A DNA stretch of 64,000 bases, taken from NCBI RefSeq assembly GCF_044704955.1, contig NC_091989.1:104470001-104534000 (forward strand). Direction: 5' to 3'. Made by a program: the position numbers and the translations under genes. The stretch comes from Pristiophorus japonicus. Taxonomy: Eukaryota. The notes beneath the pieces are model-generated. The model searched no databases. It had not been told where the DNA came from and worked only from the letters and a program-made list of their open reading frames with translations. This document shows, one piece after another, positions 1,934 through 56,690 of the stretch (the stretch's first letter is position 1; each line of letters opens with the position of its first letter).

Positions 1934-1988
1934 ATGGCGGTGTGCTCCGTGCTTTTGTGCATATCTTTGCTGGGAATTCTGTACAGAG
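1934..1988 (+). CDS. Gene A exon 1, signal peptide MAVCSVLLCISLLGILYR
   Basis: ATG at 1934, hydrophobic leader, donor AG|gtgtgt in phase 1; similar to the gene B leader. Confidence 0.8.
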
Positions 1989-4900
1989 GTGTGTTTCCTT
2001 ATCTTACCACTCCATGCTTATCAAAAAAAATCTGGTGTTCACAAAATTCGGCATATTTTGTGCACATTTCTCTCATTTTTCTCATTGTGTTATTAATGTG
2101 GCTAATTTTCTGTTTTTTCATTTCTAAGTCGTAATTTGTTCTTTTTCTAAAGTATGCAAACCATTATATCAGCATTCTTGTTATTTTCGTTTAAGTAACT
2201 TCGAACAAATTTTCGAAGATTCTACAGCTGTTGTGTTGCAAAGTTTGATAGAGTGCGTTTCCAATTTGATTGCTGGTGTTTCTTATTTCTATTTTACTTC
2301 TCTTAATTATTTTTCTTTATCTGATGTGTGCAACTGTAATCGCCATTCTTGTTTATTTTCCGATAGCCGTTGAAGTAGATTCGAACAAAGTGGACCAATT
2401 CCCTAGACACATGAAGGTTGCCAGGGGCACAAATGTTTCCATGTTCTGCACATTTCCCATATTTCAAGATGCCCCCGATGTTTATTGGAGGAGACGCGGC
2501 GAGGAGACGTCTCTGGAGCCAGACAGCAGAAAGCAATTTAATGTAAAGAAGGGCAGAGGGTCATTTGATGTCCTGAATGCGAGTGTCGCAGACTCTGGAA
2601 TGTATTACTGTACAGTAAAACATAATCAAACCACTGTTGGAGATGGAAGTGGCTCCCAGCTTACTGTGTTCGGTAAGTATCATTGTGCCGGGGAGTGGGA
2701 GATTCACAGCAGTGTGCGGTACATGTAAATCTCAATAGTGGGGGCCATTTGAACTTTTATCACTGGATGAAAACCTGCTGATGCAAATTCGTTTTACACT
2801 TCTCTCGATTTTCTTTTCCATTGACACAGGTATACTCCTGCCCGCCGATTGGCTATCGCCCATTTTGCGCTGCTCCCAAAATCAATTTCACAGCTTCATA
2901 CGAACATAAGAGCATAAAAATAGGAGCAGGAGTAGGCCATTTTGCCCCTCGAGCCTGCGCTGCCATTCAATAAGATCATGGCTGATCTGATCATGGACTC
3001 AGTTCCACTTCCCTGCCCGCTCCCCATAATCTTTACTCCCTTATCGCTCAAATATCTGTTTATCTCCGCCTTAAATATATTCAATGACCCAGCCTCCACA
3101 GCCTCCACAGCTCTCCGAGGCAGAGAATTGTATAGATTTACAAGCCTCTGAGAGAGGAAATTCCTCCTCATCTCAGTTTTAAATGGGTGGCCACTTATTC
3201 TAAGACTATGTTCCCTAGTTTTCGTTTCCCCTATGAGTGGAAATATCCTCTCTGCGTCCACCTTGTCGAGCCCTCTCATTATCTTATGTTTCAATAAGAT
3301 CACCTCTCATTCTTCTGAACTCCAATTTGTATAGGCCCAACCTACTCAACCTATCCTCATAAGTCAACCCCCTCACCTCCGGAATCAACCTAGTGAACCT
3401 TCTCTGAACAGCCTCCAATGCAAATATATCCTTGCTCAAATATGGAGAACAAAACTGCATGCAGTGTGGCATTACCATTACCCTGTACAATTGTAGCAGG
3501 ACTTCTCTGCTTCTACCTCCCTTGCAATGAAGGCTAACATTCCATTTGCCTTCCTGATTACTTGCTGTACCTGCATACTAACTTTTTGTGCACAAGGACC
3601 CCCAGGTCTCTCTGTACTGCAGCACTTTGCAATTTTTCTCCATTTAAATTATAATTTGCTTTTCTATTATCTCTGCTAAAGTGGATAACCTCACATTATA
3701 CTACATTTGTCAAATTTTTGCCCACTCACTTAGCCTGTCTATATCCCTTTGCAAATTTTTGGTGTTCTCCTCACAATTTGCTTTCCCACCCATTTTTGCA
3801 TCATCAGCAAACTTGGCAACATTACATTCAGTCCCTTCATCCAAGTCATTAATATAGATTGTAAATAATTGAGGACCCAGCACTGATCCTTGCGGCTCCC
3901 CACTCGTCACTGTTTGCCAACCGGAAACTGACCCACTTATCCCGACTCTCTATTTTATGTTAATTAGCCAATCCTCTACCCATGCTAATATATTACTCCC
4001 AACCTCGTGATTGTCCTTCCAAAGTGCTTTACATGCAATTAGTTCTTTTGGAAGTGCAGTTACAGTTGTTATGGAGGCAAGATACTGGAATAGAATAATT
4101 ATTTAAATCTTGGCTTAAAATTAATAACTTGGATTCGATTGCCAGATTTCTTCTCACCAAAATAGCGGAGTCGATGAGCGACTATGGGAACAATGTTAAC
4201 ACCTCTTAGTTCAGCTCTTTTATATAACATTAAAAGCCATCTACTCCACCCAACACGGTGCCTTCATTACAAGCTCGGCAGAACAACGTCTTGCTACAAC
4301 CCTGTTTATTTCACACACCAGGGCACATTTGCCCCCACTGCTTGAAATTGCCAACCTAATATTTTCTGCACAGAATTGCCCAAAATCTGGAATTGTCTCT
4401 CCCAGAAGGATGTGGATGGAAGGACAATTGGAGCTTTCAAGTTTGAGGTGGATAGATTTTCGTTAAGCATGGCTATCAATGGATATGGGGTTAAGTGGAC
4501 AGATGGATTTGAGGTACAGATCAGCCATAATCTAATTGAATGGCAGAGTAGATTCGAGGGGCTAAAAGGCCTCCTCCTGTTCCTATGTCCGCAGTTTAGG
4601 CTGTGTACTTCCATCGCGAACTTATTTGAGACGGCCAAACTAATTTCACAAAGGAATCATACCACATTGAGAGGGGAGGTGTTGATCTTACACTCATTAC
4701 TGGATTGGAACCCAACTCCTAGAGCTTGCAGAAACCCAATGCATCTGATTGTCCCTCTGCCTTAGGCCAATTGCGTTTTCTTTTATACACTCACAACATT
4801 TAAATTACGGGTAGATTATCACCGAACTTTCTATAAACGCCTGGACTCCCATATTCGTAATTCATGATTTCCAGTTACACTCCACCAATCCCAGACTGAA

Positions 4901-7900
4901 GTTAGGCAGGAGATCAAGAGAACACCACCCTCTTCCTCCTCCATGGAAATTCTACCGCATTACATATTAGACCTAAACAGATCCATGGGAAAGGAATGGA
5001 GGAATTCTGAGCTTTGGTTGGGCAGGGAATACGGTGCTGCTGGGAATAAAGGCTAGCATAAATTTCCAAGTTAATAATGCCCCAAATTTAAAAATTTGCT
5101 ATTACCAACATATCGGAACAATAAACATGTAAGAAAAAGATGTTAAGAAGATTGTTTGTAATAAATTGACAAACCAATGTAAACCTAATGAAGGATTCTA
5201 TTTCCAGCTAAACAGTAACTAGCTCCAGCGGACAAAACTTCACCTTAACCATAACTGATGGTTGTAGGACTGATATAAGCAGAATCGTCTTCAGGCAAAA
5301 CTTGTTCAACAGAGCAAATAGACTTCGGGAAGGGCAAAAACCCTGGAATTATATAAGACATGCACTCTGAGTTAGGATTTCCTATTCGGTTACCCCCATC
5401 TGTATGGATGTTGTGATCTATACAGATATACATAATTATCAATATAACCCTTTCATGACGTGAAAAATATTCCAGCCCTCGGTTCGCGCTCTGGAGAAAG
5501 TATATTAGAGAAAGCTGCATGATCTGAAATCTCCCCCACACAAACTGAAATGCTGAGTTAGCAACTGGAATGCGCGGGTTCTAATCTATAGATTAGCAGC
5601 ATCCAGTCTGCTGTCTGTGTAGACAACGGAGATATTTCGATATATTGGCAACAATTCTCCTTCTCATATTCACCGTTATATAAAATACGTTTCGCAACTT
5701 ATGAAATATCCCTAAAACGAACAATTTTGAAAGAAACACACACAATGTTTAATACCGCCAAGTTTATTAATGAATAACAAGATATGGTTCCACTGTTCGT
5801 GCAGATAGAGTTGCGCTGTCTCCGATATATTCGGACAGGAACCTCACTCGGGGTCACTGCTGCCAACCACAATCCGCGCCAGGATCTGATACCTCCATTG
5901 GAAACAGTGCCACGGGGCTCCCTATATGTTACCGATCCTGGGAGACTCGCCCTCTTTGCTTACAGTTTCCAATACATTCCTTCATTTTGCTGTGCGCCGT
6001 AAAACAATTTATAAAGTAAATGCGAACACGAAGTAAAATCAAAAACGTCAGCGCGGATAACTATTGTGGCAGTAGGACTGTAACCGTATAACCAGGGTAG
6101 GCAAATGAGAATGTGTTCTTTTAAATTGAAAAAATCATATTTTTTTCTGTTAAAGTTACCCCAACCCCGCTGAAAATCGCTCCTGTTGAAAGGATTTCCG
6201 CGACTTCTCTGAAACTCGAGTGCAAAACGGCTGCCTTTTTCCCGGAGGATTTAGAAATCGCCTGGCGAAGAGATGGTGACGAAATTCTGACCGGAATAGC
6301 AATCGTGAAAAATAGGAGCGCGGAGCTGTATGAGGTTTCCAGCTGGTTGGAAGAAGCACAGCCTGTTCAGAGCGGAGTTGTTTATACATGTCTGGTGTCT
6401 CATGTCTCTCTTCTGATGCCCGCCAGTGTCAGCTACACAGTAAAGCAAGGTAAGATTTGGACAGATTATGCATGAAACTGCCGCCAACATATTTCAAGGG
6501 CATTTCTCCGATGACGCAGAATTATTTGAGTGTTATTAACCTATGTCTCGTCTATCTACGTATTAACGCAATCAGCACATCTAAGATTATTACTAGAAGT
6601 GACCCCTCCATATAGTTCATCAATAGACTAGACAGCATTGAACCTAACATAGATCCGGTAGAGCTCTGTCTAGAACTCTACTGCTCCCCAGACAGAGCCT
6701 TTATTTATCACTTTCCAATTTTTCCCGAATGCCATGAGGCTGAAATTGCTTCAAAAGCCTCACGTACAGAACTTTTGCAAGTATCTTCCAAAAATATAAA
6801 GGAAGTATTACCTGGATTTCCTTCATCCACTGAGCAACTTCTCTCCTCGATTGCTTGTGGATTGATGAAACAAGACGCAGTGCTTCGAAATCCACTCTGG
6901 CTACCAGTAGAGCTATGGATTCTTTAGACCAATAAGTAACAGTTTATTAAATGTTCGGAACAGTTTTTATCACTGTGGATGTTCGAGAAAAAGTAAGGGA
7001 TGATGGAAATTACTCTGCAGATGGAAACAATTTGGCACTTGACCCCTGTGCCAATGAGAACCAGTCTCCCATGAGGGGAGTCTACGCCAGGCTATTTGCA
7101 TGAAAATCACGTGCCTTAAAGCAGTTATGGCGGGCCTGATATAATTTTCGCTGCTCTCCGGAAATAACCCGGTGGGCTGCGAGCTAATTCGGGGATATCA
7201 TGACCAGGTAATGGAGGAGCGGGTTGCAGCACCCAGATTATCGTTATGGGGTCCATAGGGCCTTCCTGTTTTTCCTAGTTTCAAAAACATAATTGAATGT
7301 ACCCGTTCATATCTCTTCATCTCTATCGCTTGTAAAACTGGCCACAGAGTGCAGGGCTTATCAGTTCTATCCAGAAATGTTCATCATAGAACCTCGATTT
7401 GGATATGAAGAGTAGCCTACTGCCTGAGACAAAGGCAATTGCCCCAAGCAACAGGTGCTCTCTGACAGTACAAGGCTCCGTTGCTGCTAAATCCACCGGG
7501 AGGACGCTGAGCACCTCGAGTCTCGTCGGAGAACTTGGAGAAATCAAGCGCAGGCAACGGAAAGAGTGTGCGGCAAACCAGTCGCACCCACCCTTTTCCT
7601 CAACGACTGTCTGTCCCGTCTGTGACAGGGACTGTGGTTCTCATTTTTTACTGTTCAGCCATCTAAGGACTCATTTTTAGAGTGGAAGTTTTCTTCGATT
7701 CCGAGGGACTGACTATGCTGATGATGACGGTGAAATCTACCGACCACATTTTGAGGCCATTAACGCACCGTTAACGCCGATGTGGGCAAGTTCAAAACGA
7801 TCGCCATGCAGTCCTGTTTAAAGTATCCATTTAATAGACTGCAGGCCTCTATATAAACCAATCATTGTTGCTTTCATTCTATAATAATTATATGCAACAG

Positions 7901-8046
7901 TTTTATATCTTGGTTTCAATCCTACATTGTAGGCCACAGTTTCAGCATCCGGCTCCTCAGAATTGCTCGGCTCGTTCTGGGTTTTTTGATCATTCTTGCA
8001 CTGACGGGTATTATTGTGGACCATGTAAAAATAACTTCCATTCAAG
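1934..8046 (+). CDS. Gene A: spliced IgSF type I membrane receptor, leader-VJ-C1-TM, putative activating receptor (SIRP-/NKp30-like family); exons 1934-1988, 2367-2672, 6156-6449, 7933-8046, terminal exon uncertain
   Basis: Four exons with canonical GT-AG boundaries, all phase 1, join into one open frame: signal peptide, V-set, C1-set and TM. Paralogous in every exon to gene B. Confidence 0.9.
2367..2672 (+). CDS. Gene A exon 2, Ig V-set domain with germline J-like G strand (...SMFCTFP..VYW..DSGMYYC..GDGSGSQLTVF)
   Basis: Acceptor ttttccgatag, donor G|gtaagt, 306 nt. B-strand Cys, C-strand Trp, DSGxYYC and diglycine GxGS-x-L-x-V motif. Confidence 0.93.
2896..4010 (-). mobile_element. CR1 LINE 3' fragment (gene A intron 2)
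   Basis: PQGSVLGPQLF, KFADD, TRGH-type C-terminus, tail. Confidence 0.92.
4380..4590 (+). mobile_element. Old CR1 3' end fragment
   Basis: IWNCLSQK..FKFEVDRF and CR1 3'UTR. Confidence 0.7.
6156..6449 (+). CDS. Gene A exon 3, Ig C1-set domain (VTPTPLKI..LECKTAAFFPEDLEIAW..LYEVSSWL..YTCLVSHVSL..)
   Basis: Not in the ORF track (no start codon). Acceptor ttctgttaaag, donor G|gtaaga, 294 nt open. C1 signatures CxxxxF(Y/F)P, W and YxCxVxH. Confidence 0.93.
7500..7730 (+). mobile_element. RTE LINE 3' end
   Basis: CPVCDRDCGSH..SHLRTH zinc knuckle and (ATG)n tail; same family as 34968-43533. Confidence 0.8.
7933..8046 (+). CDS. Gene A exon 4, transmembrane exon GHSFSIRLLRIARLVLGFLIILALTGIIVDHVKITSIQ
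   Basis: Acceptor cattgtag, donor G|gtaaga, 114 nt open in phase 1; hydrophobic span preceded by Arg. Confidence 0.85.
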
Positions 8047-8139
8047 GTAAGAACACGTTTTATTCATTCAGCAAATCAACTTCAAAGTATACAAACAGAT
8101 AGGATTGGTTTTATGTAGATGAGAAATGTATGTTTGCCA

Positions 8140-10020
8140 GCTATTTGTTTATAAGCAGCGGCAGAGAGCATCAGCTGATTAGCAAGAGGGAGCCCCCGAG
8201 CGCCAGTGATTTAAAAGGAGCGGGGCAGAGAGCAGCAGCTGATACCAGACAAACAGAGATGAAAACTCAAAAATTACGCTATTGTCAGTATAGAATGAGG
8301 AGTGGCGAGAGCCGAGGGATCATAGTTAATTGTCTAATTTCTCATCTATCAAAGTTTTAAGACCATAGTATACTTTAAAAGAAAAAATAAAGAATTGGAT
8401 TTATATAGCGCCTTTCACGACCACAGGACGTCTCAAATTATTTACAGCCAATGAAGAACTTTTGGAGTGTAGTCACTGTTGTAATGTGGGAAACGTGGCA
8501 GCCAACTTGCGCACAGCAAACTCCCACAAACAGCAATGAGATAATGACCAGATAATCTGTCTTCCTTATGTTGATTGAGGGCCAAATATCGGCCAGACAA
8601 TTTAGGTAAACAAATAGATCTGAAAACGGTGAGGCCGAGAGTGCCAAAGAGGGAAGGCAGGGTAAGTCACAGGTCAATATTTAATTTAATGCACATCTAA
8701 CTTAAATTAGATCAAGTAATTAGTTACAAAAATAAAGAATATCAGCTAAGTTGATTAATTACATAAACTTTAATTGATTAAAGAAATAAAACACAGTTAT
8801 ATAGGAATGATAGATTTGTCGCAACTGCAGCATGTGGGAGTTTGTGGGCAATATCGCAATCCAGAACAACCATATCTGAAGTAAGTGTCTGCATCTTGAG
8901 AAACCTCAGCGTTGTTAAGCTGGAATCCGAGGTGCATCAGGTGGGGCATCACGTAGGCTAGAGGAGAGTTCTCTGGTCAATTTGATCCAGGAGGCATTCA
9001 TACCTCTTGGGTTAGACAGGTCTGGGTAGTGGTAATGGACATGAGGGTATGACTGTGAGATAGGCGAGTCAGGTGCTGGAGGAACCTTAATCTTTGCCCG
9101 CATCCAGATTCTCGCTGCCTGTGTGGATGAAAGCAAAGTAAGCAGGGTGGATAAGCAAACTTACAACAGCACCGTAGTACAGGAGGCCATTTAAATGAGG
9201 GGAGTGAAATAGAATGTGGCAGTGATAGGGTACAGTAAAATCAAGGGCTAAATACTATTCTCTGCAGCCACAATGGAGAGTTCTGAATGTTGTGTTGCCT
9301 GCACCGTGCCAGGATTAAGGGTATCTCCTCGTGGCTGGAGAAGAACTTGGAGTGGGATGGGGGAGGATCCAGTTGTCGTGATGCATGTAGAAACCAACAA
9401 CATAAATAGAACTAGCAATGAGGTTCTGCTGAGGCAGTTTGAGGAGCCAGGATCCAAAATAATAAATAGAACGTTAAAGGTAATAATCTCTGGATTACTA
9501 CCTGAGACAAGCGCAAATTAGCACAGGGTCAAGTTGACTGCATGGTGGAAAGTGTGGTGTGGGAGACAGAGGTAATCATTCAAGAAGCACTGGTACCAGT
9601 ACTGGGGAAAGAAGATGCTGTTCTGTTGAGACAGACTTCACTTAAACTAGGTTGGGGCTACTGTCCTGGCGAATCAAATAACTAGGGCTGTAGATAGGGA
9701 TTTAAACTTATAAAAAGCAAGTCTTCAGGTGAGGGGAAATTTATAAATCTAAAGTGAAAAATCAGGGCAATAGAGCAATGTACTGGTTCGGGTAATAATA
9801 AGCAGAGTGTGGCAGGAAGGGACAGAGAGTTTAATGCTAATAATGTATCAGTGAATAAGGTCAAATCAGAGAAAAATAATAAAATGTTAAACATAAAGGT
9901 GCTTTACCTGAATGCACAAAGCATTCGTAAAATAGCATACAAATTAATTGCACACATAGAGATAAATGGGTTTGATCTAATAGCCATTAGAGAGCCATGG
10001 TTGCATGGTAACCATGAAAT
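8140..10020 (+). mobile_element. Old CR1 5' portion (ORF1 and EN start)
   Basis: ORF1 esterase-like remnants; LKVLYLNAQSIR-type EN start. Confidence 0.7.
8390..8599 (-). mobile_element. DeuSINE (SacSINE1-like) 3' part
   Basis: Reverse-complement match to the copy at 11742-12170. Confidence 0.7.
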
Positions 10021-10022
10021 CA

Positions 10023-11603
10023 GAACATAAGAAATACAAGCAGGAGTAGACCATTTGGTCCCTCACGCCTGCTCCGCCATTCAATAAAATGATGGTTGAT
10101 CTGACCTTGGCCTCAACTCCGCTCCCTATAACCCTTGACTCCTTATCATTCAAAAATCAGTCTATCTCCACCTTAAATGTATTCAATGACCCATAGATTC
10201 AAGACCCTCTGAGAGAAGAAATTCCTCTTCATTTTTGTTTCAAATGGGCAACCCCTTATTCTGAAACTATGCCCCCTAGTTCTAGATTCTCCCATGAGGG
10301 GAAACATTCTCTCTGCATCTATCCTGACAAGCCCCCTCAGAATCTTATACATTTCAATAAGATCACCTCCCATTCATCTAAACTCCAATGATTATAAGCA
10401 CAACCTGCTCAACCTTTCTTCATAGGACAAACCCTTCATCTCAAGAATCAACTTCTTTGAACTGCCTCCAAAAGAAGTATATCCCTCTTTACATAAGGAG
10501 ACCAAACTGTATGCAGTACTCCAGTGGTTGCAAGATTTCACTACTTTTATACTCCATCCCCCTGCAATAAAGGCCAGCATTCCATTTGCCTTTCTAATTA
10601 CTTGCTGTACCTAGAATCATAGAAATTTACAGTACAGAAGGAGGTCATTTTGGCCAATTCGTGTCCACGCCAGCTGACCAAGAGCTATTCAGCCTAATGT
10701 CTTGGTCCATAGCCCTGTAGGTTATGACACTTCAATTGCACATCCAAGTATTTTTTTTAATGTGCTGAGGTTTTCTGCCTCTACCACCATTTCAGACAGT
10801 GAGTTCCAGACCCCCACCACCCTCTGGGTGAAGAGATTTCCCCTAAACCTCCCATCAATTACTTTAAATCTATGCCCCCTGGTTGTTGACCCCACTGCCA
10901 AGGGAAACAGGTCCTTCCTATCCACTCTATCCCCTCATAATTTTATAACCCTCAATCAGGTCTCCCCTCAGTCACCTTTGTTCCAAAGAAAACTGACCCA
11001 GCATCTCAATCTTTCCTAATAGACAAAATTCTCCAGTCCAGGCAACATTCTTGGAAATCTCCTCTTTCCAGTGCAAGTACATCTTTCCTGTAATGTGGTG
11101 ACCAAAACTGCACACAGTTCTCTACTGTGACTTAACCAGTGTTTTATACAGTTCAAACATAACCTCCTTACTCTTGTATTCCATGCCTCGACTAATAAAG
11201 GCAAGTATTCCACATGCTTTCTTCATCACCTTTTCTACCTATCCTGCTACCTTCAGCGATCTGTGGATTTGTACTCCAAGGTCCCTTTGTTCCTCTACAT
11301 CTGCAAGCTAACTTTCTGTGTTTCATTTACAAGGACCCCCAGATCCCTCTGTACTGCAACATTTTTTGATCTCTCCCCATTTAAATAATAATTTGTTTTT
11401 TTACTTTTCCTACCTAAGTGGATAACCTCACATTTCCCCACATTATACTCCATCTGCCAATTTTTTGCCCACTCACTTAGCCTATCTACATCCCTTTGCA
11501 GATTATTTGTGTCCTCCTCACAATTTGCTTTTCCACTTATATTTGTATCATCAGCAAATTTGGCTACATTACACATAAAGATTGTAAATAATTGAGGTCC
11601 CAT
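10023..11603 (-). mobile_element. CR1 3' fragment with a second CR1 subfamily copy nested at ~10613-11295
   Basis: Two CR1 tails; the outer sequence resumes across the inner copy. Confidence 0.85.
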
Positions 11604-11698
11604 TAGCGATTAAAACGCTTTGCTACCAAATTGCTGACAACATAGAAAAACGATACTTTCAACACAACAATTTTCATAATTAATTCAGTTTCTTACAG

Positions 11699-11703
11699 GA
11701 TAA
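11699..11703 (+). CDS. Candidate terminal coding exon of gene A (G|GA TAA = Gly-stop)
   Basis: Good acceptor ttcagtttcttacag in unique sequence; a phase-1 join gives an immediate stop. There is no independent support. Confidence 0.3.
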
Positions 11704-11741
11704 TTCAAGTAGTAACCGCTGAACATCGAGTGCAATTTTGA

Positions 11742-12170
11742 GCCTTGGCAGAGTGGTAGCTCCTCACTTTGAGTCAGAAAGTTTGGATTCAATTCTTACT
11801 CCAGAGACGTGTGCGCAAAATCTAGGCTAATATTTCAGCGCTGCACTGAGGAAGTCCCGTCTGCCCTCTCGGATGGACGCAAAAAAAAATCCCATGGCGC
11901 TATTTCGTAGATGAGCATGGGAGTTCTTCCCGATGTCCTGGCGAATATTTATCCCTCAATCCACTTTACTACAAACGGTTATTTCGTCATTTATCTCATT
12001 GTTCTTTGTGGGACGTTGCAAATTACCTGCTGCTTTTCCCTACATTACAACAGCGACTACACTTCACAGGTACTTCAATTGTTGTTTTGGACGCCCTATA
12101 TTCCTTCGGAAATACTCTTTGGAAAGTCCTGACGTTATAAAAGGTGCTATAAGAATTCAACTTCTGTCTT
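11742..12170 (+). mobile_element. tRNA-headed Deu-domain SINE (SacSINE1-like)
   Basis: A-box TGGCAGAGTGG, degenerate B-box, Deu core CCGTCTGCCCTCTC..ATCCCATGGC.CTATTT..GTCCTGGC.AATATTTATCCCTCAA. Confidence 0.75.
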
Positions 12171-12986
12171 GTATTTTCCAAGGTATGGTTGAATAATTCA
12201 TGTCACAGGTGCCATTTTACGAATGCTCGTGTTCATTATTGAATTAACGTCTGAAAAAACTGCGGGTTTGGTATTCTGGGACAATTTTTTCAATTGGTGT
12301 ACAGGCCTCTCAGAGTGAGCTGTTTTCATGTAGTTACTTTTCCATTTTCTTCTGTTTTTTCCTCTTGTCAATGCGCGGATGCTTGCTGGGATGTCCACAG
12401 CCTTCTCCATATATTGCTCACGTGGCCACAGTTCCCGTTTGAGAATGCAGAGTGTGTACCGACAGGCATCACATGGTCAATCCGATCCCGTTCTCATTAG
12501 GCTGGCAATTTCCAGCAGCGGCCCATGGATAACACTCAGAAGCAGGATATAATGCTAATTGCTCTTTTCCTCTCGCTTGGCGCTCAGGCCAGTTTCAGCG
12601 TTTCAAATGCTGCCAGAACTGGGATCATTTAATACACCACAGACATGCAATCTAACCTGGCATATTCTGATTTGTATGGCTAGGTGCAATACCCATGGGT
12701 TCCTTGAGATGTGAATTTATTCAGGATGAAATGTAGATATTATATATGTGCAAGAGAGTATTGGAGACGCAATACTTTCAGTGAGTGCAGACTTTAGAGA
12801 TCCAAAGATTTCCATTCGGATATTCATATAACTAAGAGTCGTATTTTTGTTTCAATATCATTCCACATTGAGTGCAGTGAAAACCATTCCGTGCGACATC
12901 AATTGTGGTTTAGGTAATCGGTTGTTAATTTTTATAATAGGTAATTCTAATATAGAAACGATCAAGTACACAATTACATATACGCA

Positions 12987-14160
12987 TCCACATAAAAGGT
13001 TATTGCACAAGATAAAAGTTCACGGGATTGGAGGTAATATATTAGCATGGATAGAGGATTGCCGAGCTAACAGAAAACAGAGAGTCGGGATAAATGGTTC
13101 GTTCTCGGGTTGGCAATCAGTAACTAGTGGGATACCGCAGGGATCAGTGCTGGGATCTCAAATATTTACAATCTATATTAATGACTTGGAAAAAGGGACC
13201 GAGTGTTACATAGCCAAGTTTGCTGATGATACAAAGATGGGAAGAAAAGAAATGTGTGAGGAGGATACAAAAAGTCTGCAAAAGGACATAGACAGGCTAA
13301 GTGAGTGGGCAAAAATTTGGCAGATGGGGTATAATGTTGGAAAGTATGAGGTCATGCACTTTGGCAGAAAAAAATCAAAGAGCAAGTTATTATTTAAATG
13401 GAGAAAAATTGCAAAGTGCTGCAGCACAGCGGGATCTGGGGGTACTTGTGCATGAAACAAAAAAGCTTAGTATGCAGGTACAACAAGTGATCAGAAAGGC
13501 CAATAGAATCTTGGCCTTTATTGCAAAGGGGATGGAGTATAAAAGCAGGGAAGTCTTGCTACAGTTATACAGGGTATTGGTGAGGCCACACCTGGAATAC
13601 TGCATGCAGTTTTGGTTTCCATATTTACAAAAGGATATACTTACTTTGGAGGCAGTTCAGAGAAGGTTTACTAGGTTGATTCCGAAGATGAGGGGGCTGA
13701 CTTATGAGGAAAAGTTGAGTAGGTTGGGTTTCAACTTTTAGAATTCAGAAAAATGAGAGGTGATCTTAACAAAACGTATAAGATTATGAGAGGGCTTGAT
13801 AAGATGGATGCAGAGAGGATGTTTCCACTGATAGGGGAGACTAGAACTAGAGGGCATAATCTTAGAATAAGGGGCCACCCATTTAATACTGAGATGAGGA
13901 GAAATTTCTTCTCTCAGAGGATTGTAAATCTGTGGAGTTCGCTGCCTCAGGGAGCTGTGGAAGCTGGTACATTGAATAAATTTAAGACAGAAATAGACAG
14001 TTTCTTAAACGATAAGGGAATAAGGGGTTATGGGGAGTGGGCAGGGAAGTGGACCTGAGTCCATGATCAGATCAGCCATAATCGTTTTAAATGGCGGAGC
14101 AGGCTCGAGGGGCCATATGGCCTACGCCTGCTCTTATTTCTTATGTTCTTATGTTCTTAT
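12987..14160 (+). mobile_element. CR1 LINE 3' fragment
   Basis: RT ORFs 12847, 13301, 13753; (TTCTTATG)n tail. Confidence 0.92.
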
Positions 14161-16109
14161 TAGTGAAAGAGTAACGCCAAATTAATGTTAAAAACAAATG
14201 TAAGATTTACATCCCAATATTTTGTGGCATCCTGAGATTATGCTATATGTATTTAAAATTGAGCAAAGTTTGTCTTAGTCCTAGAATGAATTAACGTAAG
14301 AGTATTTTGATGATTATTGTCCAATCGCAAAGAGAGGATACATTTGAAGAACGTTCCTTTAATTTAATAATAGTTGGGATCTTGATGTAGTTGTGAGGTG
14401 TCTGTGAGTCTAATTATATTGATGCAGACATGCTCTAAAAGGGCCCTGCCTGTGGATGGAATACAGAAATAATAAACAAATTAATTACAATATTTAAAAA
14501 CACAGGAACGATGGGCCGAATGTCCTGCTTCCGTGCCGTACATTTCTATGATTCTATGATTGTAAATTTTGTTTTGAATGATCAGGTAAAGAACTGCTGA
14601 TAATCTCTGCCTCCGCTGCTCACAATTCCACGAGACCAATAGCTTAGCAGTTGGGAAAGAATAACGCGTGTCCAAGCACAGCTGGAAAAGTAAACAGGAC
14701 CATACGAAAGCATCGAAACGGATAAAGGGTTCACGCAGCATTCGCTTACAGCCGGTTTCCATTGCACTTCGCCGCACACTCTTTCTGTAACATTAGATTG
14801 TACAAACGTAACTGTTCATTATCTCCTGTATAAAATGAGCTTAATGCAGTCTATGTAAATGCAATGTAAAAAATAACAGACTTCATGCCAATATTTTTTT
14901 GCGGGCTGACACGTATCTTGATCGATGAATGTTTCTAGCTGGCGCTATTCCAATAAATCTAATTGTTGATATTTATACATGTCAAAGTTATATCAAGTGT
15001 GCAAACCTTTCATATGGCTTATATTTTAAGATGTAAGTTAGAGAAGTGACTTAGAGGGAAAGTTCTGTTCATAGAATTATAAATACGAGACGTGTTGGAG
15101 GCCCATTAACATTGATATTTATTTGTACTCAACATCCACGATAAGAATTTATGTCATGAGCAAAACCAATTCAAATGAAGGTTTGCTCTCTGAGTTGGAC
15201 ACTGTGAATATGGAATGGTTAAAATACGCGGTTGCATTGCGGGATACATCTTATTCGGCAGATCTACGAAAACAAATGGGAGGAGAGAAGCAGTAATTGC
15301 AACGAGAACAGTGAAAATGTATTCAACCACCTGTAGTTTGTCCTGGACTAAACTTGAAAGGCTCCATCCATTCGCACCCAAAGACATATTATTTCACCAG
15401 GGCAATTTAAAGACACAAATGACTGCTAAATAGCAAAGTAGTTAATCACAGTAACTAACTACTAATTTACTTAACAGCGAGCTAAATCCACCTATGTATT
15501 AAATCTACACCTTGTGACCAAATAGTTCAAGAAATAAACTACAGATAACTAATAAATAAATAAAGTAATTAATTCATTCATTAATTAAGATATGGCAGTA
15601 CAAGCAGTGTGTCGGGATTTTAGGGTGGAAGTTTGTGGACAAAGAGACTGTCCCACACTGTCACAGTGAAGTGAGAATGACTGTGCTTGACATCAAGACA
15701 GCATTTTACCGAGTGTGGCATCAAGGAGCCCGAGTAAAATTGAAGTCAATGGGAATCAGGGAGAACGCTCGCCACTGGCTGAACTCATACCTAGCACAAA
15801 GGAAGATGGTTGTGGTTGTTGGAAGTCAATCATCACAGCCCCAGGACATCATTGCAGGAGTTCCTCAGCGCAATGTCTAGGCCCAACCATCTTCAGCTGC
15901 TCAATCAATTACTTTCCCTCCATCATAAGGTCAGAAGTGGGGATGTTCACTCATGATGTCACAGTGTTCTATTTGGAAAACCTCATATGATGTAGCAGTA
16001 CACGTATGGCCTTGGGCTGATAAGTATCAAGTAATATTTGTGCCACACAAGTGCCAGGTAATGACTATCTCCAACAAGAGAGTCTAACAATTCCCCCAAC
16101 TTGACATTA

Positions 16110-16661
16110 TGTATTGTATGGGGTTAATCACATAGGGTTAATTATGATATTTAGTCATTCACAGTGTGTCTCTGCTCCGTTTCGTGGATTGTTGTTGCTA
16201 TATATAGAGAGAGAAAGCGACCTTGGATGCACACCAGCTTGTTATGAGACGGTCCGCGGCGCAAGATCTCATGCTTTGTGGACAAGCTTCTAGGGCCTTA
16301 CAGATTAGGAGTTGGCCATAAGCCACATGCACCCATGTTTTGTTCAATAGTATGTTTATTTGATAGTATAAAGGTACAGCACTGTCCCGTAGCTCTTTGA
16401 ACTTCACCTTGGACCGTGATTCGTGAGCGGTGCAGGGACCCCCAAATCTCCAGACCAGCCGTCCCTTGTGGAGTTCCCGATAGGCAGAAGGCCGTGAGCA
16501 TTGTTGCATCTAATCATACTTTCCTTTTCTTCGTAAACTGTAGCATTAATGTTTCTTTTCTCTCAGTAAACGGTATCTTATTCTTTACTTCATTTGTCTT
16601 GTCTCTTATTTAACATTCATCCAGATCCCGAACCTGGGTCTATTATTATTTATCCAAAATA
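16110..16661 (+). repeat. ERV LTR1 (552 bp)
   Basis: TGTATTG...CCAAAATA; TATAAA box; direct repeat of the other two LTRs. Confidence 0.93.
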
Positions 16662-16664
16662 TTT

Positions 16665-16682
16665 TGGCGTCACGAACAGGAT
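16665..16682 (+). other. Primer binding site TGGCGTCACGAACAGGAT, complementary to the 3' end of tRNA-Ser(CGA); second copy at 18809-18826
   Basis: Lies 3 nt after the LTR. The reverse complement ATCCTGTTCGTGACGCCA matches the vertebrate tRNA-Ser(CGA) 3' end as I recall it; not database-checked. Confidence 0.8.
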
Positions 16683-18245
16683 CTGGTAAAATCTTTAAGA
16701 GAAAAGACAAAAAGCAGTCTCCTCCTGCGGGAGAGAAGTATAGAATACCAGGGTGGAGCACGAGGGATGAGGGTTTTGGCTCTCTTGCCAATGTGCTAGC
16801 CTGGCTTGGACCCCCGCAACATGGGGATATGCCGTTATTGGAACAGAACAAAGATAGAGCCGTACCCCACGCGGTACTGTCTCTCCTGGAGGAAGCGGGC
16901 TTCCCACAGGAGAAAAATAGTCCCCCAGAAATGGGATGGATTTTGTTGACAGCATTAAGGGCGATGTGCAAAGAACGTAAGGAAAGTGAGGCAGAAAACC
17001 TACAGTTAAAAACAGCTGTTAAGGTTTTGGAAAGTCAAAACTCGACCCTGACTGAAGCGGTCAGCACTGCACAAGAACGGGCGGACAAGGTCAATGAACA
17101 ATCAGAAACTTTAATATGCTGTTTGGCGACAGTACAAAATAAAAAGAAAGCCAGACCACGGAAATTACAGATGGATTTGAAATATACCTTTTGTATTTGC
17201 TACTGCATGTGGTATGGGCTTGCTCAATCCGATCCCAGTGAGTGTTTAAAAGCCCATGCAAAATCATCTGGGGAATGTATACAAGCTGGAAAAAATGGAG
17301 AGGGGGAGGGGAACGGGAGGAAATTAAAGACCCTCCCCCATACGCTCCGAGCAAAGGAAGCTAGACCCCTTATGACAAATAAGACAAAACAGCAAGATGG
17401 TGAACAGCCGGTAACCACTAGAGGGGTGCGTGACTTCACCACAAGTGAGTTCCAAGAAATGGTTACTATAGGGGTCCGGCAAAAATATCCCTCTGCCGTT
17501 GATTGGGAAGGGGAGGTAAAACCTTGGAATACTATGGCAGAGGGTGCGATACAGTTGCGCAGCATGGCAACACAGGCAGGAATATATTACCAACTATATG
17601 GGGGCCAGATCAGGAGCTCTTTATGGCAGGAATGCGGAGCAGGCTGATGAAGAGTGGCCCTCCTATGATGAGGGGTGAGCTACTCGCATTATTGGGACCA
17701 GCCCAAGGGCAGTGGGTGGGGCACGCCTGCCTATTGTTAGGACAGTTAGAGGATGTAGAAGATCCCCTCGACTAGGGATGTGGCTGGGATCCGGGAGCAC
17801 TCCCCATTAGAACCACATCAACCCAAGCTCCCGGGGATCTGAGGCCACACATTCCGATTACTTACCTGGCAGGGGAGTAAACATAATTAGCTTTGTTGAA
17901 TGAAGAAAGACTTTGTGAATGTCTGTCTGTGAATGAAAGTACTTTTGTGATTTTTTGACTGCGGAATGAATTTTTCATGTGTCTGAAAACCTGTTTCGAA
18001 AAATATTGGAGCTGTCTGTTTGTTTTAGCTCCACCCACTTTTTCAAACAGAGTGAAGGTTTTTTTAACCCTTCGTAGTGTTGTCCTGTATGTGGGAAGTC
18101 TTAAATAAGTGTGAACCTTACAGGGGAAACCATACAAGGGCTCTTGGGGGCGATTATCATTAGACATGCGGTGTCCCCCTACAATAGCCCTGTTTGGCCT
18201 GTACAGAAACCCAACAAAAGTTGGAGGATGACTGTGGACTACCGA
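16683..18245 (+). pseudogene. gag: Truncated provirus A internal region: gag with deletions, foreign insert, start of RT
   Basis: ORFs 16664..17647 and 17503..17775 parallel the second copy. The region ends at RT motif VDYR. Confidence 0.8.
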
Positions 18246-18805
18246 TGAATTGTATGGGGTTAATCACATTGGATTAATTATGATATTTAGTCATTTCATA
18301 GGGTGTCTCTGCTCCCATGCCCTGTAGAATGTTGTTGCTATTTCGAGAGAGAGAGGGATGCGACCTTGAGATGCACACCAGCTTGTTATGAGATGGTCCA
18401 CGGCTTGAGCTCTCATGCTTTGTGGACAAGCACCTGGGGCCTTACAGATTAGGAGTTGGCCATAAGCCACATGCACCCATGTTTTGTTCAATAGTATGTT
18501 TATTTGATAGTATAAAGGTACAGCACTGTCCCGTAGCTCTTTGAACTTCACCTTGGACCGTGATTCGCGAGCGGTGCAGGGACGCCTAATGCTCCAGACC
18601 AGCCGTCGCTTGTGGAGTTGCCAACGGGCGGAAGGCCGTGAGCGTTGTTGCATCTTATCATACTTCTCTTTTCTTTGTAAACTGCATTATTAATGTTTCT
18701 TTTCTCTCACTAAACGGTATCTTATTCTTTACTTCATTTGTCTTGTCTCTTATTTAACATTCATTCAGATCCCGAACCTGGGTCTATTATTATTGATCCA
18801 AAATA
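18246..18805 (+). repeat. ERV LTR2 (internal, 560 bp, variant U3)
   Basis: Direct repeat followed by a PBS; joined directly to RT sequence with no PPT. Confidence 0.92.
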
Positions 18806-18826
18806 TTTTGGCGTTACGAACAGGAT

Positions 18827-20236
18827 CTGGTAAAATATTTAAGAGAAAAGACAAGAAGCAGTCTCCTCCTGCGGGAGAGAAGTATAGAATACCAGGGTGG
18901 AGCAAGAAGGATGAGGGTTCTGGTTCTCTTGCCAAGGTGTGAGCCCGGTTTGGACCCCCATAACATGGGGATATGCTGTTATTGGATCAGAACAAAGATA
19001 GAGCCGTACCCCACGCGGTACTGTCTCTCCTGGAGGAAGCGGGCTTCCCACAGGAGAAAAATGGTCAGTCCACAAATGGGATGGATTTTGTTGACAGCCT
19101 GAAGGGCGATGTGTAAACAACTGAAAGAAAGTGAGGCAGAAAACCTACAGTTGAAAACAGCTGTTAAGGTTTTGGAAAGTCAAAACTCGACCCTGACTGA
19201 AGCGGTATGCACTGCATAAGAGCTGGCTGACAAGGTCAATGAATAATCAGAAAATATAATATGCTGTCTGCCGACAGTACAAAATAAAAAGAAAGCCAGA
19301 CCACGGAAATTACAGCTGGATTTGAAATATATCTTTTTTATTTGCTGTTGCATGTGGTATGGGCTTGCTCAGTCCGATCCCAGTGAGTGTTTAAAAGCCC
19401 ATGCAAAATCATGTGGGGAATGTATACAAGCTGCAAAAAATGGAGAGGTGGAGAAAGGGAGGAAACTAAAGACCCTCCACCATATGCTCCGAGCACAGAA
19501 GCTAGACCCCTTATGACAAATAAGATGAAACAGCAAGATGGGGAATAGCCGGTAACCACTAGAGGGGTGCATGACTTCACCACTAGTGAGTTACAAGAAA
19601 TGGTTACTATCGGGGTCCGGCAAAAATATCCCTCTGCCATTGATTGGGAAGGGGCGGTAAAACCTTGGAATACTATGGCGGAAGGTGCGATACAATTGCG
19701 CAACATGGCAACGCAGGGAGGAATATATCACCAACAATATGGGGGGCCAGATCAGGAGCTCTTTACGGCAGGAATATGGAGCAGGCTGATGAAGAGTGGC
19801 CCTCCTATGATGAGGGGTGCGCTACTCGCATTATTGGGACTAGCCCAAGGACAGCGGGTGGGGCACACTTGCCTATTGTTAGGACAGTTAGAGGATGCAG
19901 AAAATAGTGTGTGAGAGTCGAGAACGGCTAATGTAGAGGGGGATCGGGACCAGCGACAAAGTTCGACCTCTGGGAAAGGTACAGGGTCAGGAAAGACAAA
20001 AAAAAGAATTACGCGGAGGGACATGTTCGCGGCTTTACTGAAGACAGGGGTCCCCAAGGGAAAAATTGATGGAATCCCAACAGGAGCGATGTATTCTATG
20101 TGGAAGCAACATTGCGTCCCGGAAACAGAGCAGGGTGAAAGGAGGGAGTTAAGGGAGACTAAGTCGTACAGTGATAAGTCTGTGGATGTACCCCAAAGTA
20201 GAAGAACTGTGGAAGGCTAGTAACCCCCTCGACTAG
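18827..20236 (+). pseudogene. gag: Degenerate gag of the second internal region
   Basis: Fragmented ORFs 19322, 19567, 20023 between the PBS and the protease; multiple stops and frameshifts. Confidence 0.8.
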
Positions 20237-23200: not shown

Positions 23201-23282
23201 GGACACAGTTTGTGAAGGCGGAAAAGTGTGGGCGCAGTACCGCCAGAAACCCTTACAAGCAGGGGAAATTGGGTGCTCCTGA
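20237..23282 (+). pseudogene. pol: Degenerate pro-pol (protease, RT, RNase H, integrase)
   Basis: AALLDTG; SPYNSPVWPV, DLANAFFSIP, HYIDD; WFTDGS..AEL; WQVDY.GPLP..AVDTYSG..SDNGSHF..IERMNG; several in-frame stops. Confidence 0.93.
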
Positions 23283-23349
23283 CTGGTCAAGATATTCCTC
23301 TCTGTGTTGACAAGGGTAAATTGACTAAATGAGGCTGAATATTAACATA

Positions 23350-23697
23350 CCTATGCTTCCTCCCACAGGATTTCTGCCCAACTCGTGCTGGCCAGTCTCG
23401 GTGTCTCGTTATCTGTGACTATGCTACTCCATCTTCAAACACAGCATGGGATGGCCATATAGGGTGACTGTTAGCTAACACTGATCGTACGCAAGACAAT
23501 TACTAACCTTCCTCCCACTGTAGACCTAACTTGTTTAGCTCAATTTCTAAAAGCTAACACTGATCGTTGTTTTACTCATCGCGTTATTACTGATATTACT
23601 GCTTGTATGTATCCTTTGGTGTAGATTGCGGTCATTGCTTGCGCATACTCAACATGTAACTGGTGCATTACGCCTTCAACTTGATTGTATTACTTAG
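23350..23697 (+). pseudogene. Heavily deleted env-like remnant (splice acceptor plus TM anchor LIVVLLIALLLILLLVCILWCRLR)
   Basis: Position between IN and PPT; acceptor cttcctcccacag; strongly hydrophobic frame at 23560-23697. Confidence 0.5.
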
Positions 23698-23721
23698 AAT
23701 GTCTAAATATCAAGGGTGGAT

Positions 23722-24273
23722 TGTATTGTATGGGGTTACTTACATAGGGTTAATTATGGTAATTATTCATTCACAGTGTATCTCTGCTCCGTTTCGTGGA
23801 TTGTTGTTGCTATATATAGAGAGAGAAAGCGACCTTGGATGCACACCAACTTGTTAAGAGACGGTCCGCAGCTCAAGATCTCATGCTTTGTGGACAAGCA
23901 CCTGGGGCCTTACAGATTAGGAGCTGGCCATAAGCCACATGCACCCATGTTATGTTCAATAGTTTGTTTATTTGATAGTATAAAGGTACAGCACTGTCCC
24001 GTAGCTCTTTGAACTTCACCTTGGACCGTGATTCGCAAGCGGTGCCGGGACCCCCAATGCTCCAGACCAGCCGTCGCTTGTGGAGTTCCCGACGGGCAGA
24101 AGGCCGTGAGCATTGTTGCATCTTATCATACTTCTCTTTTCTTCATAAACTGTATTATTAATGTTTCTTTTCTCTCAGTAAACAGTATCTTATTCTTTAC
24201 TTCATTTGTCTTGTCTCTTATTTAACATTCATCCAGATCCCGAACCTGGGTTTATTATTATTGATCCAAAACA
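23722..24273 (+). repeat. ERV LTR3 (552 bp)
   Basis: TG...CA termini, preceded by PPT-like AAGGGTGGA, followed by the TSD. Confidence 0.93.
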
Positions 24274-51763: not shown

Positions 51764-51889
51764 CTATGTTATTCGTCTTTGTTTTTTAGTCTGCAGCTCG
51801 GCATACTCTGTGCTTCTTTCGCTATTAATGCGTGTTCCCGTTTTCTCTGAGCTAGTCAATACTACAGTCGCGTACGTCCCTTGTTCAGT
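51764..51889 (-). CDS. Gene B terminal exon TEQGTYATVVLTSSEKTGTRINSERSTEYAELQTKKQRRIT* (ITIM-like GTYATV, ITSM-like TEYAEL)
   Basis: Acceptor gctttacag in phase 0, TAG stop, AATAAA about 315 nt downstream. Confidence 0.78.
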   Translation of the reverse strand, partial: TEQGTYATVVLTSSEKTGTRINSERSTEYAELQTKKQRRIT

Positions 51890-52096: not shown

Positions 52097-52198
52097 CTGA
52101 GCGTACACTGTTCTCTCCTCTTCAAGTTTACGTCTTGGAGTTTTCCGGACTCTGTTCAAATCTAATGCAGCATAATTCACGGTCTCAGCCGCTGCTCC
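52097..52198 (-). CDS. Gene B cytoplasmic exon with ITIM VNYAAL and TVYAQ motif
   Basis: Open frame GAAAETVNYAALDLNRVRKTPRRKLEEERTVYAQ, donor CAG|gtagga. The in-phase acceptor position reads cat rather than cag. Confidence 0.7.
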
Positions 52199-52742: not shown

Positions 52743-52786
52743 CAGCTCTTCACAGCGGTCCGGTCCCTCTACACATTCTTCTTTAC
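52743..52786 (-). CDS. Gene B short cytoplasmic exon GKEECVEGPDRCEEL
   Basis: Acceptor cgtttccag, donor CTG|gtaggt; converts phase 1 to phase 0. Confidence 0.7.
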
Positions 52787-53468
52787 CTGGAAACGAATGA
52801 AATGTAATGACATTCAAAGATTTAAATAGTTACTCAGTTTCCATGTCAGTGACTGTAAAGACATTTCTAGAGTCAGGTCAAAGCCGAGCATGCTTTCCAA
52901 TTCCGGGTTGTGCCGACAGTATTTGAAATCTCAGCCCTTGTAGCGATTTGCAATGGTGCATTTTTGGGACATTTTTCGGAAACCAACTTTTTGGACAGCA
53001 AGGAGATCAAGGGTTATGCGGATAGGGTGGGATAGTGGGGTTGAGGTCGAAGATCAGCCATGATCTTATTGCATGGCGGAGCAGGCTCGAGGGCAATATG
53101 AACTCCTCCTGCTCCTATTTCTTATGTTCATGTGTGTACAACCATTCTCCCGTCGGAGCCTCACTCTACTGCGCATCCACAACAGAATGGGTCGGAAAGT
53201 GATTGTATTTCAGGCTACATGTAATTTATCATGCTGCACAGGGGGATTTTTACTGCAAAAATCCAGATAATTACTTCCACTTTTATTACCATTCTGTGAC
53301 TTTTTCTGCCATTTTAAAATGCATTTGGAACAATCGGCACTCCCTGAAAATAGATAACACGGTTTCAACTTGAAGTCCCAATTGAGTTCTCCTTCCCCCG
53401 TGTTACCCGGAGACTGTCACTCACCCTGAGGTTTTGTACTAAAATCAAGGGCTTACAGTAGACATTAC

Positions 53469-53570
53469 CTTCATTATTCTGCAGTCGGCATCGCGTCCCA
53501 ATGAAGATCATTAGCACTAGAAACGCCAATCCCCCCACCGCCCGGAAGTAAACTGAATTATCGACGCTAC
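53469..53570 (-). CDS. Gene B transmembrane exon GSVDNSVYFRAVGGLAFLVLMIFIGTRCRLQNNE
   Basis: Acceptor ttttgcag, donor G|gtaatg, 102 nt open; hydrophobic span followed by basic residues. Confidence 0.8.
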
Positions 53571-54627: not shown

Positions 54628-54742
54628 TACATTTCCTACATTACAACAGTGACTACATTCCAAAATTACTTAATTGGCTGCATAGCGCTTTGAGACGTCC
54701 GGTGGTCGTGAAAGACGCTATATAAATCCAAATATTTTCTTT
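54628..54742 (+). mobile_element. DeuSINE 3' tail fragment
   Basis: CCTACATTACAACAGTGACTAC..CGCTATATAAAT, as in the other copies. Confidence 0.65.
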
Positions 54743-54815
54743 ATTAAACTGTACGATATATCGCTTTAAAAAATTACAGTAACGATCTCTCCTTTTTGGA
54801 CTGTTGGCCACATAC

Positions 54816-55127
54816 CTTGGTTAGATTTAGAAACAGTATATGTGACCACAGCTGGAGTCTGGAGGGAGACATGAGATACCAAACAGGTATAATTGGTGTC
54901 GCTCGGGACAGGCTGCGTCTCAGCCAAAGAGCTGGAAACTTCATACAGTCCCTCGGTGTTCTGCACTTTATTCGTATCTGTTATTAATGCAATTTCTACG
55001 CCATTTTTGTACCAAGTGAGGGTGAAATTCTCCGGATAGAACGCAGCCGTTTTACACACAAGAGTCAGAGACACAGATGAGTTCCCTTCAGTTGTCCCGG
55101 AGACAATCTTCAGTGGAGTTGGGGCCG
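54816..55127 (-). CDS. Gene B Ig C1-set exon (APTPLKI..LVCKTAAFYPENFTLTWYKNG..YTCLVSHVSLQTP..)
   Basis: Core of ORF 54766..55170; acceptor ttccgcag, donor G|gtatgt, 312 nt; strong similarity to gene A exon 3. Confidence 0.92.
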
Positions 55128-56169: not shown

Positions 56170-56479
56170 CATGTACAATTAGTTGTGAGCCGGTTCCATT
56201 TCCTCTAACTACTCCCCGATAGAACACTGCGCACTGATAGACCCCAGAGTCTTGGAAAGTCGCGCTCAGCAACTGAAAGTAACCGCTCGCTTTATTTTCC
56301 TGACCAAATTGTTTTCTTTTGTCGGTGCTTGTGCGCAGGTATTCATTCTCACCAATACACTCTTACCCAGTGTGGGTCCTGAGAGATGGGGAATATGCAA
56401 TAGAAGGTGATGTTCCCACCTCTGGACACAGTCGTTTGTTTGGGCGCTTCAGTCACACTAAACGAAATCTGGTTCGCTG
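56170..56479 (-). pseudogene. Gene B VJ-type V exon, frameshifted (..NITFYCIFPISQD..VYW / GENEYL..DSGVYQC..GNGTGSQLIVH)
   Basis: Acceptor tttccttccag, donor G|gtaagt. The two halves of the V domain are in different frames, switching right after the C-strand Trp. Confidence 0.88.
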
Positions 56480-56647
56480 CTGGAAGGAAATATCGTCAAG
56501 TACAGGTTAATTGTATTAGACAGGACATGGAGATGGAAGACAGAAAATAATCTAGATAGAGGAAGTACTTTTCACTAAGTTAGTGTGGAAACTATGTCGG
56601 AAGCATTTTATAAATTAAAGTAGCTGAGACAATAAATAAAGAGGTAC

Positions 56648-56690
56648 CTGTGTAAATAATCCCCCGGAGAGTCAGGCACAGGAAAAGCAT
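56648..56690 (-). pseudogene. Gene B leader exon MLFLCLTLRGIIYT
   Basis: ATG at 56690, donor G|gtacct in phase 1; aligns with the gene A leader (LLCISLLGILYR). Confidence 0.7.

Follow-up and report, generated by a model that had tools for sequence, protein, structure and literature searches.

Two members of a chondrichthyan V(J)-C1 receptor family at a sawshark locus: one activating-type gene, intact, and one inhibitory-type gene with a broken V exon

Described receptor systems and a related sawshark locus

Vertebrate innate immunity has repeatedly arrived at receptors that come in paired activating and inhibitory forms. The described systems closest to the genes treated here include UrIg and UrIg2, elasmobranch, non-rearranging genes with C1-type domains, a single-exon VJ and a split leader. 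UrIg is linked to the major histocompatibility complex (MHC), whereas UrIg2, with its 9-11 C domains, is a neighbour of the immunoglobulin (Ig) and T-cell receptor (TCR) loci (PMC12227049). We analysed a stretch of 64,000 nt from the sawshark Pristiophorus japonicus (contig NC_091989.1, positions 104,470,001 to 104,534,000 of the forward strand; hereafter "the window"), which contains two paralogous receptor genes in tail-to-tail orientation, gene A at 1934-14647 (+) and gene B at 56690-51764 (-). In the oldest lineage of jawed vertebrates, pairing on a V(J)-C1 core is relevant to the relations among SIRP, NKp30 and the Ig/TCR chains.

The two genes probably belong to a chondrichthyan-specific family of clustered genes for V(J)-C1 receptors that do not rearrange and come in activating and inhibitory types, gene A being intact and gene B broken, and they are best regarded as neighbours, not as a pair. 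Two exons are visible as open reading frames (ORFs), the V exon of gene A and the C1 exon of gene B, and these served as probes in tblastn searches for paralogs within the window. Such matches were found for a C1 exon at 6161-6454 (+) and for a V exon, of which the second half was matched at 56323-56165 (-); the C1 exons of the two genes match each other at E 7e-26. Exon models were obtained by reading the DNA directly and then checking frames and splice sites by script. All introns of both genes are GT-AG, and those separating leader, V, C1 and transmembrane (TM) exons are all phase 1. Together with the Pfam matches given below, these results bear out one part of the sequence-only reading of the locus, an earlier reading in which two paralogs in convergent orientation had been proposed, each with leader, V(J), C1 and TM exons. 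All searches and the fold prediction were run exon by exon, and the two pieces of the gene B V exon were joined with X for identity values and trees only.

An exhaustive HMMER search with the gene A V exon returned 147 representatives at E < 1e-10. Many of these are giant multi-Ig proteins that match by generic Ig similarity only, and about 50 short proteins (<520 residues) are family members, to which two later searches added more. The members, all of them Gnomon or UniProt predictions, come from Callorhinchus, Heptranchias, Heterodontus, Scyliorhinus, Chiloscyllium, Carcharodon, Cetorhinus and Mustelus as well as Mobula, Narcine, Amblyraja, Leucoraja, Pristis, Hemitrygon and Hypanus. Their automatic names are in conflict (SIRP-alpha-like, SIRP-beta-1-like, NCR3LG1-like, tapasin-related-like, Ig lambda-like and TCR-beta-like), the commonest NCBI label being SIRP-alpha-like. 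Within each species, the listed members with a reported contig are all on the same large contig. Genes A and B are ordinary members of this large, clustered and unnamed "SIRP-like" chondrichthyan family, which has already been predicted; the earlier suggestion that the family might be known by automated SIRP-like or NCR3LG1-like labels proved right across shark, ray and chimaera predictions. In the literature on UrIg, SIRP in shark, PRARP, VJ-C1 and NCR3 we found no description of the family, and overlap with the published shark NCR3 family is possible. No bony-vertebrate ortholog surfaced in the family searches, two of which are uninformative on this point: a word-indexed protein search with the gene A V ORF gave 2 matches, and a search with the family alignment among 8000 candidates gave 14, nearly all of them chondrichthyan. 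A search of the ESM Atlas returned generic Ig clusters only.

Most members have the layout V-C1. V-only relatives (P0081, P0028) and V-C1-C1 relatives (P0138, P0179) exist as well, and the compact V-C1 layout, by which the earlier reading had characterised the cluster, therefore does not define the family. The inhibitory type has a TM segment of the GCAGG type and two to four tyrosine motifs of the form [ILV]xYAxL or TxYAx[ILV]. The activating type has R-x16-[D/E/N]-H in the TM segment and a short tail; it is present in at least nine shark species and was seen in the sawshark, Heptranchias, Heterodontus, two Scyliorhinus species, Chiloscyllium, Carcharodon, Cetorhinus and Mustelus.

When the V-C1 profile of the family was compared with solved structures, the best non-antibody match was UrIg2 (9dmx, 129 bits), and for the C1 domain of gene B alone it was UrIg2 (9dmx) as well. 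Genes A and B share with UrIg and UrIg2 the non-rearranging single-exon VJ, the split leader and C1-type domains. In contrast, UrIg and UrIg2 have several C domains and no activating/inhibitory split, whereas genes A and B have one C1 followed by a TM segment and belong to a multigene cluster of V-C1-TM receptors. Taken alone, the V domain resembles V-NAR, TCR V-beta, CD79b and I-set domains by sequence profile, and the best fold matches of the gene A V model are V-NAR, CD79b and TCR V-alpha. SIRP and NKp30 are absent from the best 60 V-profile matches and from the fold matches listed.

These values bear on an alternative in which the family represents the SIRP orthologs of cartilaginous fish and acts as a self-recognition checkpoint via a CD47-like ligand. 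Among solved structures other than antibodies and UrIg, the best match to the V-C1 profile is SIRP-alpha (2wng), with 110 bits in one stretch across both domains, and both systems combine a non-rearranging V(J) followed by a C1-set domain, an inhibitory tail with four tyrosines in two pairs, and activating members with a charged TM segment and a short tail. The existence of V-C1-C1 members and the prevalence of the SIRP-alpha-like label also speak for orthology. However, SIRP is V-C1-C1, whereas genes A and B have one C1 each, and the family V domain has no specific likeness to SIRP in either comparison. SIRP-beta has a mid-membrane Lys in its activating TM segment, unlike the outer-edge Arg plus Asp-His of the family. 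As no bony-vertebrate ortholog surfaced either, we regard SIRP orthology as unlikely. By these comparisons, the family has an antigen-receptor-like V-C1 core together with a SIRP-alpha-style tail, and its placement inside SIRP, NCR3 or UrIg appears unsupported.

NKp30/NCR3 is similar in having a germline VJ-type domain and an outer-edge Arg in the TM segment of the activating form; its J region has a doubled Gly-x-Gly, as in the family, and the V-only relatives P0081 and P0028 add to the likeness. Genes A and B differ in having a C1 exon between V and TM, and NKp30 lies outside the best sequence and fold matches, although a distant relationship is possible. The shark NCR3 family treated by Kinlein in 2021 is reportedly MHC-linked. 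In the white shark, the MHC is on chromosome 19 (PMC10751288), and a member of the family described here is on a contig of 193.5 Mb. Judged from these sizes, the family would not be MHC-linked in the white shark.

With KIR, LILR, CHIR and the teleost NITR, the family shares its organisation as a clustered multigene family with either a charged TM segment or a tail with immunoreceptor tyrosine-based inhibitory motifs (ITIMs), the presence of pseudogenes, and ectodomains that are homogenised between types. The ectodomains of those systems are C2/I-set, or V-I in NITR, as opposed to V(J)-C1, and the relation in sequence is limited to the Ig fold. The V-C1 core itself is shared with Ig/TCR chains, V-NAR and CD79b, and the best V matches are V-NAR, CD79b, TCR V-alpha/beta and V-lambda. 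Unlike rearranging antigen receptors, the genes described here have V and J in one exon, with no recombination signal sequence and no separate J segment, and are germline-fixed.

Gene A and its predicted mode of signalling

Gene A is encoded by five exons on the + strand. Exon 1 (1934-1988) encodes a split leader (MAVCSVLLCISLLGILYR) and is followed by a phase-1 donor GT at 1989. Exon 2 (2367-2672), which is visible as an ORF and was confirmed by homology, is an intact, germline-joined V(J) exon that ends with GDGSGSQLTVF, the J motif GSGSQLTV being contiguous with V in one open exon. It matches Pfam V-set at 4e-11 over positions 1-108 of 109, the J strand included, and its AlphaFold model (pLDDT 92.8) lacks regular C' and C'' strands. 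Exon 3 (6156-6449), found by tblastn and homology, encodes a C1-set domain with the stretch VYTCLVSHVSL (Pfam C1-set, 8e-8). Exon 4 (7933-8046), defined by homology and splice sites, encodes the stalk and the TM segment, (G)HSFSIRLLRIARLVLGFLIILALTGIIVDHVKITSIQ, with the motif Arg-x16-Asp-His.

The predicted proteins P0183 and P0189 of the sevengill Heptranchias perlo are 68-72% identical to gene A in V, 72-74% in C1 and 73-75% in TM; the values for P0183 are 68% in V and 75% in TM. After the TM exon, both proteins continue with GKGRLAISASAAHNSTR, and the same ending is present in Heterodontus P0181 and Scyliorhinus P0178. A tblastn search with the C-termini of these four proteins (P0183, P0189, P0181 and P0178) gave one match on the + strand, at 14585-14635, with 82% identity and E 4e-5. 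The region has a good acceptor AG and the right phase, and exon 5 (14586-14647) encodes (G)KELLIISASAAHNSTRPIA, followed by a stop codon at 14645-14647, and contains no tyrosine. This terminal exon of the activating type, GK[EG][LR]L.ISASAAHNS.R, is kept in sawshark, Heptranchias, Heterodontus and Scyliorhinus. The cytoplasmic part of gene A comprises about 29 residues with zero tyrosines.

Inhibitory-type TM or ITIM exons were absent from the + strand between gene A and the tail exons of gene B (to about 51.7 kb) in a standard tblastn search with family proteins, and a relaxed-threshold search of 6450-30000 found no inhibitory tail exon above noise. Gene A is an intact activating-type member of the family. 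The sequence-only reading had described it as having an Arg-bearing TM segment and no ITIM tail, a description that the newly located tyrosine-free terminal exon at 14586-14647 completes.

By analogy with described receptors, the mode of action of gene A can be proposed. The encoded product has a signal peptide, a V domain that is short, antigen-receptor-like and equipped with its own J strand, a single C1 domain, and a TM helix with a conserved Arg at the outer end and Asp-His at the inner end. The Arg may dock on the TM Asp of an adaptor dimer with immunoreceptor tyrosine-based activation motifs (ITAMs), as in NKp30, NKp46, SIRP-beta, activating KIR/LILR and CHIR-A, and ligand binding would then lead to cell activation. 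Alternatively, gene A might not be ITAM-coupled at all, its charged TM segment serving for assembly with another chain of the family or for retention, so that the product would be a decoy or a co-receptor. The simple adaptor model needs neither the conservation of both an Arg and an acidic residue in one short TM segment nor that of the terminal exon, and both are observed. However, an outer-end TM Arg together with a short, tyrosine-free tail is the established mark of adaptor-coupled receptors, and activating forms persist beside inhibitory forms across sharks. A decoy or co-receptor role is therefore distinctly improbable, and adaptor coupling is the preferred prediction for gene A.

Three further observations concern gene A and its orthologs. 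First, in Heterodontus P0181 the terminal exon directly follows C1, the TM exon being skipped, and the protein may represent a soluble isoform. Second, the 5' flank of gene A at 1157-1362 (+) matches the mispredicted N-terminus of Heptranchias P0189 with 40-52% identity as translated, and may be a conserved upstream block or 5'-untranslated region. A further part of P0189, residues 47-110, is matched within gene B at 52064-51873 (-) in a different frame, a hint that in Heptranchias the 3' end of an inhibitory gene lies upstream of the gene A ortholog. Third, a C1-like match of 18 residues (LATECRAYQFYPE) is present at 7311-7376 (+) in intron 3 of gene A. It was rejected as an exon: 2 of 500 shuffles equalled it, and it has no similarity at the DNA level. 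It is probably a chance match, possibly a fossil exon.

Gene B and its relation to gene A

Gene B is encoded on the - strand. A check of frame and splice sites places the split leader (MLFLCLTLRGIIYT) in exon 1 (56648-56690), and homology and read contigs place the V(J) domain in exon 2 (56170-56479). The intact C1-set exon 3 (54816-55127) is visible as an ORF and matches Pfam C1-set at 1e-12; it is 70% identical to P0122 of Mustelus asterias, and the V domain of gene B is 67% identical to that protein. Exon 4 (53469-53570), assigned by homology, encodes a TM segment, (G)SVDNSVYFRAVGGLAFLVLMIFIGTRCRLQNNE. This segment (VYFRAVGGLAFLVLMIFIGTRCRLQNNE, with YFRAVGG) corresponds to the inhibitory GCAGG type of the relatives, with an Arg in place of their conserved Cys; it does not represent the activating motif.

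The tail is encoded by two modules, each found by homology and a frame check. Exon 5 (52097-52194) reads VNYAALDL…TVYAQ, with the motifs VNYAAL and TVYAQ(T), and exon 6 (51764-51889) reads TEQGTYATV…STEYAELQTKKQRRIT, with the motifs GTYATV and TEYAEL and a stop codon at 51766-51764. The gene thus has the ITIM motifs VNYAAL and TEYAEL plus two further tyrosines, in a gene whose V exon is frameshifted. Both exons contain two tyrosines that are 23 residues apart (Tyr-x22-Tyr). The tail of SIRP-alpha has the same 23-residue tyrosine spacing, which is used by the tandem SH2 domains of SHP-1/SHP-2. By analogy, tails of the gene B type would recruit SHP phosphatases through the tandem SH2 domains of SHP-1 or SHP-2. 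The four-tyrosine tail is as had been described from the sequence. Of the contrast in signalling ends that had been drawn between the genes, the ITIM tail of gene B stands; an Arg in the TM segment is not confined to gene A.

The V exon of gene B is broken. After FPISQDPHWVRVYW (…VRVYW) the next codon is TGA at 56351-56349 (TGG TGA), and the remainder, ENEYLRTSTDKRKQF (ENEYL…GNGTGSQLIVH), is in the +1 frame. The exon is missing from the list of ORFs because its frame is broken by this TGA. All relatives align to it in two frames, with the junction at 56352/56353. The intact Mustelus ortholog P0122 has three extra residues at the junction, and the gene B copy is short by 11 nt; in the assembled haplotype, this 11-nt deletion leads to an immediate stop. 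A Logan DNA contig from one sample (X1) contains an exact copy of 341 nt (56324-56664) that carries the break, and a contig from another sample (X6) is identical across the break over 155 nt (56285-56438). The break is therefore not an assembly slip. In this respect gene B departs from the earlier description, its V exon not being an open frame. The 155-nt contig X6 has a depth of 4.9 and stems from a small run (137 Mb) of unrecorded kind; this depth in so small a run suggests RNA, in which case the broken gene B may be transcribed.

Gene B of the assembled haplotype can be regarded as a recent pseudogene or a null allele. It is possible, though somewhat doubtful, that gene B is functional in the species and that one haplotype carries the frameshift as a null allele while an intact allele exists, as in polymorphic KIR/LILR loci. 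The remaining exons and all splice sites are intact, and a further contig (X3), from the same individual as X1, differs by a 3-nt insertion (56371/2) and an A>G change (56386), and its alignment ends at 56350, beside the break. A second allele or a close paralog therefore exists. Against a functional gene B, the broken sequence is present in contigs of two samples (X1 and X6), and the loss of the conserved TM Cys fits relaxed constraint.

Genes A and B had been proposed to form an activating/inhibitory pair. They are 40% identical in V and 56% in C1, and separate V and C1 trees place them in different subfamilies. Gene A falls into a clade with genes of Heptranchias, Heterodontus, Scyliorhinus and batoids, with SH-aLRT support of 97-99 in the first trees; in larger trees, the support is 98 for C1, and there is no starred support for V. 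Its nearest relatives are activating genes of Heptranchias and inhibitory genes of Heterodontus. Gene B groups only with Mustelus P0122 (SH-aLRT 96-99). A functional cognate pair that recognises the same ligand would fit two adjacent, convergent paralogs with opposite signalling ends. However, the low identities, the different subfamilies in both trees and the frameshift in the V exon of gene B argue against it, as do true pairs of the family, which have near-identical ectodomains. In Scyliorhinus canicula, the activating P0178 hardly differs in its ectodomain from P0180, which has a TM segment of the inhibitory type, and close similarity between forms is also found for P0181/P0182, but not for genes A and B. 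A cognate relationship is thus very improbable, and the proposal of a matched pair has to be given up for these two genes.

At the level of the family, the idea of paired receptors is well founded: activating and inhibitory forms occur in many sharks, and the ectodomains of the gene A subfamily cluster by species and not by signalling type. For example, the inhibitory genes of Heterodontus cluster with a gene that carries the activating-type terminal exon. A tree in which the activating ectodomains of this subfamily were forced into one clade was rejected (log-likelihood difference 133.6; approximately unbiased (AU) test, p 5.8e-8). Among the species concerned, the TM exon and the terminal exon of the activating type are conserved as well. 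The simplest reading of these alignments and trees is that ectodomains have repeatedly been homogenised or shuffled between activating and inhibitory genes. Within subfamilies, the activating and inhibitory genes of a species have ectodomains that are nearly identical, and gene conversion or exon shuffling presumably maintains this likeness. A pathogen-driven arms race, which the earlier reading gave as the usual background of paired families, is conceivable here. Because of this homogenisation, the cognate inhibitory partner of gene A is expected elsewhere in the sawshark cluster.

Several points weigh against the view of an intact activating gene next to a broken, non-cognate inhibitory gene in a family of paired receptors. 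The splice junctions of both genes, including the 6.5-kb intron before the last exon of gene A, are based on homology to predicted proteins of other species, and no public run recorded as RNA was found to contain the locus. Some of the database proteins that were typed as activating or inhibitory are truncated models or isoforms, and the group used for the AU test was named after the first tree had been seen. The version in contig X3 may be an intact gene B allele or a close paralog. Lastly, the steps of adaptor and phosphatase binding are drawn by analogy.

Wider significance and repeat content

Taken alone, the locus contributes a further copy of a family for which many genomes already have predictions. 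It adds a resolved activating gene model that includes the conserved terminal exon, and an example of gene death or of a null allele in the inhibitory type; the analysis adds evidence at the family level for homogenisation of ectodomains between the two types. Tentatively, the family might represent an ancient V(J)-C1 paired-receptor system confined to sharks, rays and chimaeras, with kinship to the stem from which SIRP and the antigen receptors derive, in which activating and inhibitory genes exchange ectodomains and signalling exons have stayed orthologous for >200 million years. The TM segment with Arg-x16-Asp-His and the ISASAAHN exon could then reflect an adaptor coupling that has not been described.

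The window is without N and consists mostly of LINE/LTR transposon sequence. The approximately 37 kb between the two genes (14.7-51.7 kb) are transposon sequence as well and contain no exon of the family. A block at 16226-24137 (+) resembles an LTR retroelement. Its direct repeats, each about 300 nt long and 92-93% identical, are located at 16226, 18370 and 23838, and the block has an internal duplication of 2.14 kb and pol-like ORFs at 20623-23282.

Short repeats are common to the introns of both genes. One is located at 54629-54757 (-) in gene B and at 8365-8496 (+) in gene A, and a second one at 53051-53135 (-) in gene B and at 2904-2988 and 10023-10144 (+) in gene A, identities being in the range of 74-86%. 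The read-contig depth at these repeats reaches 1e5-1e6, and they are present in high copy number. The repeats shared by the introns of genes A and B are SINE-like elements and not conserved parts of the genes.

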